This document shows positions 37,398 to 50,990 of a stretch of 64,000 nt of DNA, in pieces. The notes beneath the pieces were generated by a model. That model was not told where the DNA came from. It did not search any database and worked only from the letters and a program-made list of their open reading frames with translations. Where the stretch lies: IMG/VR virus record IMGVR_UViG_3300032236_000747, positions 290,681-354,680 of that record, one strand, 5' to 3'. Every line of letters starts with the position of its first letter. Positions within the stretch are counted from its first letter, which is position 1. The position numbers and the translations under genes were made by a program.

Positions 37398-37416
37398 ACT
37401 AGTAATAAATACCTAC

Positions 37417-37479
37417 ATCCAAATAGCATCCCGGCGTAGCCAGGGCTAGATAGGGCTAGGCGAAGCTAACTGTTTGGAT
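37417..37479 (+). ncRNA. Candidate small structured RNA or leader transcribed from a late promoter
   Basis: TAAATA 37406-11 predicts +1 at 37417, the first base of the closing stem ATCCAAATAG/CTGTTTGGAT; two internal hairpins. Confidence 0.45.
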
Positions 37480-37486
37480 CGTCGGG

Positions 37487-37515
37487 TTGACAACATTCCT
37501 TGATTGTTGTATAAT
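37487..37515 (+). promoter_or_regulatory. Sigma70 promoter for the tmRNA precursor
   Basis: TTGACA-N17-TATAAT perfect consensus. Confidence 0.9.
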
Positions 37516-37520
37516 AAAAG

Positions 37521-37586
37521 TTATTGCTGTATGAAGCAAAGAGAAAAGTGTTCTGGACGCGGGTTCGACTCCCGCCAGGTCCACCA
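37521..37586 (+). ncRNA. ssrA: Permuted two-piece tmRNA, acceptor piece
   Basis: T-arm GCGGG-TTCGACT-CCCGC, acceptor 3' strand CAGGTCC-A-CCA. Confidence 0.93.
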
Positions 37587-37597
37587 TAAGGAAGTTT

Positions 37598-37840
37598 GTG
37601 AAAGAGTATTACATAGTTAATGGTAAAAAGTGTAAAAGAGATTCATTGCAAGATGACCTCATTTGGTCCATGAAACAATCCGATAACACTTTCAAACATT
37701 ATTGGATAGACGAACAGCAAGGATTAGGAAACAGTCACGGTGGACAATATATGCCTCCGTGGATTATGAATCGTAATCGTTATGTTGTTGATGATTTTGG
37801 AACGGTTGTAAAATATCTTCCATACAAAGTTTCTTTATGA
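37598..37840 (+). CDS. 80-aa ORF inside the tmRNA intervening segment
   Basis: AAGGA RBS plus GTG right after CCA; stop ends 1 nt before tmRNA G1. Confidence 0.7.
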   Translation: MKEYYIVNGKKCKRDSLQDDLIWSMKQSDNTFKHYWIDEQQGLGNSHGGQYMPPWIMNRNRYVVDDFGTVVKYLPYKVSL

Positions 37841-37841
37841 T

Positions 37842-38030
37842 GGGCCTGCCATGGTTTCGACAGGGCAAAGAGTAACAGAGTGGACAGCAGGGCAAAGCAG
37901 AAGCCCTTAGGGTTGGGGATTCCCGGCCGTAGACGCAAAAAAAGTAAATGCAAACGACTCACAGTTTCTAATGGTTGCCTGATAAAGGCTTCCGGGGTAG
38001 GAAATACCTTGCAACAGAAAATAACAGAAC
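37842..38030 (+). ncRNA. ssrA: Permuted two-piece tmRNA, coding piece; tag ANDSQFLMVA*
   Basis: GGGCCTG pairs with CAGGTCC giving G3.U70; GGTTTCGAC; TAAAT-GCA resume at 37950; TGA TAA at 37980-85; 3' end approximate. Confidence 0.92.
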
Positions 38031-38049
38031 CCGCTTCGGCGGGTTTCTT
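38026..38049. terminator. Bidirectional Rho-independent terminator
   Basis: AACCCGC-TTCG-GCGGGTT between convergent transcripts. Confidence 0.85.
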
Positions 38050-38728
38050 ATGTTTTCTTAGAAGCCCATTGTTTAACTGCTGGATAGTATGTTGTAAACA
38101 GTTGATGACGTTTTTTGATTTCAGCAGCAGGCGCAGCTTTTCCATTAATGGCTCTTGTAACTGAAGCAGTATCAGCAAAGTCCTTTATACGTCTTTTAAC
38201 ATTTTGATCCCAAAACCATTTAGCAATCTTTGCCGCTTCGTGGGGATCTGCTGCCTTACTAGGATGTTCAACATAATATGATTCATCGCCATGCACGCCT
38301 GCGCCAGCAGCAATATAGTTACCCTTGCCTGTTAACTGAATGAATCCACGTCCGGCATATTCCAAAGCATCATTTGCGCCTTGGTTACCTGTGCTACGTG
38401 CATATTTGTGAGCTGCTTTATTAGGCCGACCTATCTCGCCGAGGTGTTTAAAGTTACCTGTTTCTGCGCTACACTGTGCTAGAAACTGTGCTAGTTCTGT
38501 TGGCTCGGTCATACCGCTGTTAATAGCATGTGAAGACAGTATTTTACGTGCTACATCGGCATCAACTTTTGGTGCTTGAACTAGTGGTTGCACTTTTGTA
38601 CTACGTGGATCTATTTTTTGGGGATGTTGAACAGGCTTGGCTTGTGCTATACCTGCTGCCATTGCGGCTGCTCCACCAAGGAATCCCCTGCGTGTTAAAT
38701 CTTCTCTAGTAATTTCGTATATTCGCAT
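38048..38728 (-). CDS. Glycoside hydrolase family 19 (endolysin/chitinase-like) with twin-arginine-like N-terminus
   Basis: FLAQCSAETG and YAGRGFIQLTGKGNY motifs; TRRGFLGG; TAAATA-N4-ATG. Confidence 0.88.
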   Translation of the reverse strand: MRIYEITREDLTRRGFLGGAAAMAAGIAQAKPVQHPQKIDPRSTKVQPLVQAPKVDADVARKILSSHAINSGMTEPTELAQFLAQCSAETGNFKHLGEIGRPNKAAHKYARSTGNQGANDALEYAGRGFIQLTGKGNYIAAGAGVHGDESYYVEHPSKAADPHEAAKIAKWFWDQNVKRRIKDFADTASVTRAINGKAAPAAEIKKRHQLFTTYYPAVKQWASKKT

Positions 38729-38757
38729 CAAGTATTTAGTTATGGATAAAAGATGAC

Positions 38758-50674: not shown

Positions 50675-50923
50675 ATGACCTACGCTGAATATTTCGACCT
50701 AGTAACCTATAAAGCAACATATCACCTAGGTGATAGAATCATAGGTAAGCATAATGGTATTCCATTTGTAGGCACTGTTGGCAATGATAGACAACTTAAT
50801 CCAACGGAAGGTCCACGTATTAGTGTTCATTTAGATTTGCCATTAAAGGTTGACGGAACAGTTAAATGTGTTATACTAGTTAAACACAAAGATGTTAAAC
50901 GTCTTAAAGAATTAAGCGTCTGA
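50675..50923 (+). CDS. Hypothetical SH3-like small protein
   Basis: 82 aa; last 8 nt overlap tRNA 5' end. Confidence 0.6.
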   Translation: MTYAEYFDLVTYKATYHLGDRIIGKHNGIPFVGTVGNDRQLNPTEGPRISVHLDLPLKVDGTVKCVILVKHKDVKRLKELSV

Positions 50924-50990
50924 GGCTAAGTGGTATTGCAAGGGCTTCTAAAACCCGAGACAGCAGGTTCGAACCCTGTCAGGCGCACCA
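50916..50990 (+). tRNA. tRNA with CUA anticodon (amber suppressor-like)
   Basis: 75 nt; GCGTCTG/CAGGCGC-ACCA acceptor; D-loop AGTGGTA; loop TTCTAAA; T-loop TTCGAAC; anticodon stem only 3 WC pairs. Confidence 0.75.

Follow-up and report, generated by a model that had tools for sequence, protein, structure and literature searches.

The two-piece tmRNA gene of a large phage carries a genuine 80-codon protein gene in its intervening segment (IVS), the spacer predicted to be cut out when the tmRNA matures. In related phages the same spacer holds at least 38 unrelated families of small open reading frames (ORFs), so that it acts as a swappable gene slot, of which we found no description in the full-text literature searched, a collection lacking many subscription papers. 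The observation made in an earlier note, that a 255-nt spacer is filled by a Shine-Dalgarno (SD) site and an 80-codon ORF and that its paired ends extend the acceptor stem by about 17 bp, is correct. The interpretation offered there is partly supported: the idea that a cargo gene exploits the excised spacer as an insertion or cassette site is strongly supported, whereas the idea that tmRNA maturation releases or controls an mRNA is compatible with the anatomy and remains an inference from sequence alone.

A protein-coding gene inside a permuted tmRNA gene

The window (the whole 64,000-nucleotide stretch of DNA that was analysed) is from a large phage and carries ribonucleotide reductase subunits, rIIA, an endolysin and a NadR-like gene. 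ARAGORN calls one permuted tmRNA in it, and the Rfam model RF04321 (tmRNA_permuted) scores 106.9 bits against a cut-off of 47, treating the entire IVS as one large insertion between CCA and the 5' acceptor strand. The hallmarks of alanine identity are present, namely a G3.U70 pair, a discriminator A and an encoded CCA, together with a tag reading frame with an Ala resume codon and a hydrophobic C-terminus, although the window's ...LMVA ending is atypical; tags of relatives end in ...ALAA. A single promoter and a single terminator delimit a self-contained transcription unit of about 530 nt. A standard tmRNA model also gave a hit at 37400-37586, suggesting an upstream tmRNA remnant, but when re-run with context this proved to be only the T-arm piece.

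Table 1. Features of the tmRNA gene and its intervening segment (positions in the window, + strand).
Position	Feature	Basis
37487..37515	Sigma-70-type promoter TTGACA-17-TATAAT (12 of 12 matches); the only promoter-like site ahead of the tmRNA/ORF unit	Promoter search; equivalent TTGACA...TATA(A/C)T boxes at the same place in related loci L005, L012 and L020 (alignment)
37494..38073	Permuted tmRNA gene	ARAGORN
37525..37982	Match to RF04321	Rfam covariance model
37525..37586	First tmRNA piece, beginning with the 5' pairing strand	Rfam alignment, ARAGORN, sequence
37559..37575	T-arm	Sequence
37576..37582	Acceptor 3' strand CAGGTCC	Sequence
37583..37586	Discriminator A and CCA (ACCA)	Sequence
37583..37600	5' strand of the precursor helix prolonging the acceptor stem (ACCA + UAAGGAAGUUUGUG); contains the SD and start codon	Folds, covariation
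37587..37841	IVS, 255 nt, predicted to be absent from mature two-piece tmRNA	Rfam insertion between CCA and G1; same boundaries in 128 related loci
37588..37594	SD AAGGAAG, starting 2 nt after CCA; part of the 5' helix strand	Sequence
37598..37840	80-codon ORF, GTG start at 37598; small protein of unknown function (family A)	ORF listing, dN/dS, homologues
37823..37841	3' strand of the precursor helix (UACAAAGUUUCUUUAUGAU); encodes the last residues YKVSL and the stop codon	Folds, covariation
37838..37840	Stop TGA, one base before G1	Sequence
37842..38026	Second tmRNA piece, including the pseudoknot region	ARAGORN, Rfam
37842..37848	Acceptor 5' strand GGGCCTG	Sequence
37935..37985	Tag as placed by ARAGORN (AKKVNANDSQFLMVA, then two stops)	ARAGORN
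37950	More likely resume codon GCA, giving ANDSQFLMVA	Analogy with tags of relatives
38027..38056	Intrinsic terminator (8-bp GC-rich stem, then a T run); also delimited as 38027-38046	Terminator search; conserved in the relatives (alignment)

To determine whether the ends of the IVS pair, we folded the IVS alone and the whole 535-nt precursor. The helix appeared in both the minimum free energy and centroid structures of the IVS, and in both structures of the precursor, in which the 7-bp acceptor stem continues into 17 more pairs (precursor z-score -3.29). The fold of the IVS alone is not unusually stable (z = -1.49), and the evidence for the helix therefore comes from comparison between loci rather than from folding energy.

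Next, we tested whether the ORF is a real gene. In 5000 dinucleotide-preserving shuffles of the IVS interior, the frame stayed open from the GTG to the terminal TGA only 24 times. A word-indexed protein search found only near-identical proteins, one 90% cluster of 22 members plus one other, and in all of their contigs the ORF lies inside a permuted tmRNA; a metagenome scan by protein added only one locus. Among eight distinct nucleotide versions, pairwise dS reaches 0.79 while dN stays at or below 0.05, giving dN/dS of 0.04-0.08, and variable sites by codon position number 8, 5 and 28, so that 28 of 41 are at third positions, indicating strong purifying selection. An exhaustive phmmer search of 1.84 billion representatives found three distant homologues, P0017 (51% identity, E = 5e-21), P0018 (E = 3e-16) and P0020 (E = 7e-4). 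Full-length identities are 34-51%, with 69% over the part covered by the N-terminally shorter P0018. The homologues lie outside any tmRNA, P0017 and P0020 being encoded in tightly packed phage-like gene arrays with no tmRNA, and the protein family therefore exists independently of tmRNA. Its conserved core is G-x-G-x-x-H-G-x-x-x-x-P-P-W ... V-x-D-D-x-G. Searches for a function gave nothing: Pfam and PHROGs returned only sub-threshold noise, the ESM Atlas gave scores of 0.62 or less, and an AlphaFold2 model from a 7-sequence alignment was unreliable (pLDDT 47, pTM 0.24). All related sequences come from uncultured phages; blastn against 50,697 phage records matched only the T-arm region and found no isolated phage with this ORF.

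A hypervariable slot closed by a covarying helix

We subsequently compared IVS content across related phage loci, the test that the earlier note had proposed. The first informative locus, L020, has a partial tmRNA unit carrying this ORF, followed by a second promoter and a complete tmRNA whose 184-nt IVS holds a different, 56-aa ORF between the same ends. Two further loci, L024 and L025, carry homologues of both of these ORFs as free-standing genes immediately upstream of a permuted tmRNA whose 402-nt IVS holds a third ORF of 125-130 aa. We then scanned IMG/VR with two exact patterns taken from the IVS boundaries and extracted every IVS lying between a T-arm/acceptor/ACCA and a complementary GGG... 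acceptor strand. Because the loci were found in this way, conservation of the pattern bases (TAAGGAA and CTTTATGAT) and the apparent prevalence of the phenomenon are biased. A scan of a genome collection with a 15-mer pattern returned chance matches and no tmRNA locus, and carries no information on host or bacterial tmRNA genes.

The IMG/VR scan gave 128 loci with 95 distinct IVSs of 67-482 nt. Of these 95, 83 have AAGG/AGGA/GGAG in their first 12 nt with the start codon 4-8 nt after the GG core, and in 68 the SD-proximal ORF covers at least 80% of the IVS. The 76 ORFs of at least 20 aa fall into 38 families with no detectable similarity to each other. Several match known families: a thioredoxin with the CGPC motif (PF00085, 75 bits), a GNAT acetyltransferase (PF13508, 28.5 bits against a cut-off of 27), a DUF2061 membrane protein (75.7 bits) and an Oxidored-like peptide (PF09791, 37-41 bits), while one IVS (L127, 482 nt) carries an HNH-like gene just under threshold (20.6 bits, cut-off 21.4). 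Many others are short hydrophobic peptides. Families with several members show dN/dS of 0.11-0.46. A few short IVSs in the same lineage (L257, L248 and L191) have no ORF.

The ends of the slot are shared. In 45 of 95 IVSs the ORF stops at the UGA 1 nt before G1, so that unrelated proteins all end in ...(V)SL; in 16 more, the ORF's own TAA or TAG sits 8-16 nt before the IVS end, in most cases directly abutting the 3' strand of the helix, and others stop earlier still. The stop is not conserved within the window's own family, being TGA in the window and in loci L015-L017 but TGC or TAC in most others, without other change in close relatives, which gives 83-98-aa read-through products. Some IVSs hold two ORFs: in L250 these are joined by the 3'-end motif fused to the 5'-end motif (...CTTTA-A-TAAGGAAGTTTT), whereas the junction in L209 keeps only the 5' SD motif.

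To examine whether the helix is under selection, we compared 42 distinct end combinations, in which positions +1 to +10 after CCA pair with the positions counted back from G1 in 35-42 cases. Positions +7, +8 and +9 and their partners, which lie outside both search patterns, show compensatory changes (A-U/U-A/U-G; G-U/A-U/U-A/G-C; and U-G/U-A/G-C, respectively). Cognate end pairs fold at -12.2 kcal/mol and non-cognate pairs at -9.9 kcal/mol, and none of 2000 permutations reached the cognate mean. The statement in the earlier note that permuted-tmRNA spacers are typically short holds for the Rfam consensus (about 24 nt), on which, together with the 2025 tmRNA database paper (PMC11915505), our view of bacterial IVS lengths rests. 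Cultured Stenotrophomonas and Xanthomonas phages with the same tmRNA type have IVSs of 57-137 nt, also closed by a perfect 9-11-bp helix and preceded by UGAU|GGG, but with no SD and no contained ORF. The helix and the UGAU are therefore features of the tmRNA precursor, older than the ORFs, and the helix is not primarily an ORF regulator; in the ORF-bearing lineage the 5' strand has become an SD and the UGA serves as a stop.

Cassettes also move independently of the tmRNA body. Among loci that carry the window's ORF, the IVS is 87-100% identical, the T-arm piece 71-100%, the first 60 nt after the IVS 66-100% and the pseudoknot/tag region 45-82%, with tags ranging from 10 to 32 residues. Loci L003 and L019 share an identical 255-nt IVS, including all synonymous sites, inside tmRNA genes whose corresponding parts are 71%, 66% and 45% identical, and L015 and L016 have identical IVSs with tag regions 49% identical. 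Selection on the protein cannot produce this pattern, whereas recombination can. The different ORFs are unlikely to be assembly chimeras, because the same cassettes recur in independent samples. In the accepted model, permuted RNA genes arise by tandem duplication followed by loss of the outer segments (Williams 2002, as summarised in PMC3978253), which makes the IVS a former intergenic spacer, and L020 looks like such a tandem intermediate.

Models for the cargo gene and its expression

In our favoured reading, to which we assign a probability of roughly 0.65, the ORF is a genuine small phage protein gene in the IVS of a phage-encoded, betaproteobacterial-type two-piece tmRNA gene, and in this phage tmRNA lineage the IVS is a hypervariable gene slot. 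The slot supplies a ready-made translation start (UAAGGAAG, 3-4 nt, then AUG/GUG, directly after CCA) and a ready-made end (...GUU UCU UUA UGA U, directly before G1), and these conserved ends are the two strands of the helix. The anatomy, the coding selection, the helix covariation, the cassette diversity and the mosaicism are demonstrated by our analysis; what follows about transcription, translation, processing and exchange is inferred, without expression, processing or proteomic evidence. The cargo, having no promoter of its own, would be transcribed from the tmRNA promoter as part of the precursor. Ribosomes would load on the SD, most plausibly while the transcript is nascent, during the roughly 240 nt before the 3' strand exists, after which the helix would close, hiding the SD and start and bringing the two tmRNA halves together across the long insert. 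RNase P (at 37841/37842) and 3'-end trimming to CCA (37586) would then release the two tmRNA pieces and the IVS. Since a terminating ribosome at the UGA would cover the acceptor 5' strand, translation and tmRNA folding on one molecule should be mutually exclusive. Sequestration of the SD and start argues against efficient translation of the finished precursor or of the excised IVS, and in the best-studied analogue, the Coxiella 23S IVS, the ORF appears untranslated and the IVS RNA is rapidly degraded (PMC4990558). Cassettes would be exchanged by recombination in the conserved tmRNA/helix flanks, with tandem intermediates such as L020 moving them in and out of the slot.

A less likely alternative is that the ORFs are purely selfish or neutral passengers, morons or homing-type elements inserted where DNA does no harm because it is discarded from the mature RNA, with a helix that exists only for tmRNA folding and processing. 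This overlaps with our favoured reading and differs only in denying any functional link to the tmRNA. The ORF-less helices and UGAU of the Stenotrophomonas and Xanthomonas phages, the HNH-like gene of L127, the identical cassettes in divergent tmRNA genes and the view of the 23S rRNA IVS as a selfish element (PMC4990558) are in line with it. However, the 5' strand has become a strong, correctly spaced SD in most distinct IVSs but not in the ORF-less cultured relatives, the ORFs use the slot's own start region and stop with no spare nucleotides, they are under purifying selection, and only one of about 40 cargo families looks like an endonuclease.

Trans-translation-coupled expression is also unlikely on present evidence. 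In this view, RNase P cleavage leaves the IVS mRNA with its stop codon 1 nt from the 3' end, or with no stop at all in the TGC/TAC variants, so that ribosomes finishing the ORF on the excised IVS would be substrates for the phage or host tmRNA, and the amount of untagged cargo protein would report the cell's trans-translation capacity in an ArfA-like feedback. The geometry allows this reading; ArfA, which is made from an RNase III-truncated non-stop mRNA and controlled by tmRNA, is a precedent, and the stop lies at -4..-2 relative to G1 in the 45 IVSs noted above. Against this, the UGAU before G1 is also present in ORF-less IVSs of cultured phages, where it pairs with ACCA, so that the UGA is explained by the helix and need not be there as a stop; many IVSs stop earlier; and the cargoes are too heterogeneous (thioredoxin, GNAT, membrane peptides) for one shared regulatory logic. 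A related and doubtful, though not excluded, possibility is that the precursor is a bifunctional RNA whose maturation is mechanistically tied to cargo expression, with translation of the nascent IVS and closure of the SD-containing helix mutually exclusive and protein output from the stop-at-the-very-end or non-stop message gated by the trans-translation system in which it is embedded; this would be a phage-borne cassette platform with built-in, tmRNA-dependent post-transcriptional control. Finally, that the ORF is a chance open frame in an AT-rich structured spacer, as the lack of Pfam or PHROG matches, the low-confidence AlphaFold2 model, the GTG start and the unremarkable IVS fold might suggest, is effectively refuted by the shuffles, the dN/dS of about 0.05, the homologues in tmRNA-free contexts and the canonical thioredoxin among sister cassettes.

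tmRNA genes are among the best-catalogued RNA genes, with about 97,000 curated sequences, yet their intervening segments are treated as discarded spacers. Use of this spacer as a standardised slot, with a fixed ribosome-binding site, start position and stop, for small genes that are shuffled between phages adds a new way in which phages package and exchange accessory genes, and gives genome annotators a concrete reason not to discard ORFs that overlap tmRNA calls. It also offers a compact natural system for asking how translation and the folding and processing of a structured RNA compete on one transcript and, if the stop-at-the-end geometry matters, it would link cargo expression to ribosome rescue.

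Comparison with known systems

Genes nested in an excised segment of a stable-RNA gene have precedents; the distinctive property here is a standardised, hypervariable slot. Circularly permuted tmRNA genes of betaproteobacterial type, including phage-borne copies (PMC9004378, PMC11915505), share the gene order of T-arm/CCA piece, IVS, then acceptor 5' strand, pseudoknot and tag, as well as G3.U70 and the encoded CCA; in addition to the RF04321 match, RF01850 (beta_tmRNA) hits the relative L020 at 105 bits. Described IVSs are short non-coding spacers, and the 2025 database paper singles out only a tRNA-Ala gene and a repetitive element as unusual contents (PMC11915505), whereas here the IVS is a protein-coding slot with a built-in SD, start and stop.

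[quoted passage not shown] We found no intron family hit at the locus and no endonuclease domain in the window ORF, no religation is expected, and the cargo is not an endonuclease, apart from possibly that of L127. Integron cassettes resemble the slot in that promoterless, compact, unrelated ORFs are swapped at one site and expressed from a resident promoter, and arrays of two cassettes occur, as in L250 and L209; however, by eye no attC-type site, integrase or GTTRRRY core was seen at the boundaries, and exchange is more simply explained by homologous recombination in the conserved tmRNA flanks.

The closest precedent is the ORF-bearing IVS of 23S rRNA in Coxiella and Leptospira (PMC4990558), also a segment inside a stable-RNA gene that is closed by a long helix formed by its own ends and excised without religation, leaving the mature RNA in two pieces. 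There the host RNA is rRNA, excision is by RNase III, and one ORF family (S23p) lacks a good RBS and appears untranslated and decaying; here the host RNA is tmRNA, RNase P and 3' trimming are expected, and at least 38 unrelated families occur with a strong SD and under purifying selection, the window ORF giving no S23p (PF05635) match in the Pfam scan. The helix predicted here (7 + 17 bp) would in principle be long enough for excision by RNase III. In tRNA-punctuated transcripts, such as those of mitochondria and the phage T4 tRNA-cluster co-transcripts, an mRNA and tRNA-like RNAs are also made as one transcript and the mRNA ends are set by tRNA-processing enzymes, but here the mRNA lies between the two halves of one tRNA-like domain, and its SD and its stop are themselves paired with each other in the predicted precursor.

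An Oxidored-like peptide and a longer HNH-like gene in the intervening segment

We next examined a class of intervening segments (IVSs) of 109–115 nt, present in the related phage tmRNA loci L146, L152, L160, L162, L179, L185, L192, L202, L204, L207, L225, L230, L233, L235 and L238, which had appeared to lack an ORF. These segments encode a conserved Cys-rich peptide (CCG[KR]GCExCVW...) that matches the Pfam family Oxidored-like (PF09791) at 37–41 bits, above the cut-off of 24, with synonymous variation between variants. There is no ATG, GTG or TTG in that frame inside the IVS; the only canonical start is the ATG of the conserved tmRNA 5′ motif GTATGAAG, meaning that the frame, if it is translated at all, would run through the whole T-arm/CCA piece.

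The longest IVS found (482 nt, locus L127) carries an HNH-like gene of 156 aa, whose match to PF01844 (20.6 bits) falls just below the cut-off of 21.4. A homing-type nuclease in this slot could drive local gene conversion and help explain the mosaicism of the cassettes.

Tandem and free-standing arrangements, and a probably coincidental called read-through

In the related locus L020, two tmRNA units lie in tandem, the first consisting of a promoter, a T-arm piece, an IVS with the window's ORF and a degenerate acceptor piece without a tag (RF04321, 48.4 bits). This is followed by a second consensus promoter and then by a complete permuted tmRNA with a different IVS ORF, an arrangement that looks like an intermediate of unequal recombination. 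In L024, and also in L025, homologues of the window's ORF (N-terminally shorter, with a coiled-coil-like C-terminal extension) and of the second ORF of L020 lie as ordinary adjacent genes, directly upstream of a tmRNA whose IVS holds a third ORF of 125–130 aa.

Additionally, in a variant from a 1066-bp contig of NCBI assembly GCA_041442895.1 (P0002), the called ORF runs from inside the IVS gene through the acceptor piece and pseudoknot region, continues in frame into the tmRNA tag (...AKNVNANDESFALAA) and ends at the stop of the tag. This is probably a gene-caller coincidence created by the change from TGA to TGC.

Coordinates of features in the window and in related phage loci
Sequence	Coordinates	Strand	Feature
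L020	650-1550		Two tmRNA units in tandem
L024	2501-3578		Adjacent free-standing homologues directly upstream of a tmRNA with a third IVS ORF
L127	5958-6425		HNH-like gene in the longest IVS
Window	37950-37985		Tag peptide
Window	38048-38731	-	Endolysin/chitinase-like protein
Window	50916-50990	+	tRNA called by Rfam

The tag and the surroundings of the window's tmRNA

The tag peptide of the window ends in ...FLMVA followed by two stop codons, in contrast to nearly all relatives, which end in the canonical ...ALAA; this difference may alter protease recognition of tagged proteins. Converging on the tmRNA terminator is a gene for a 227-aa endolysin/chitinase-like protein (PHROG 181, 4e-29), which has an N-terminal twin-arginine-like signal (RRGFLGGAAAMAAGIAQA).

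Elsewhere in the window, Rfam calls a tRNA (46 bits, with an encoded CCA) that is not called by ARAGORN. In the Rfam alignment, its anticodon stem has mismatches at both ends and the middle of the loop reads CUA, which would be an amber-reading anticodon. The fold is not more stable than shuffles (z = -0.39).

In several relatives (L005, L008, L009, L010 and L003), the tmRNA lies within or next to a tRNA gene cluster, with Met, Arg and Leu upstream, and Glu, Tyr, Asp, Arg and His downstream, compared to the window's copy, which lies between a 455-aa Ala/Ser/Thr-rich gene and the endolysin, with no tRNA nearby.
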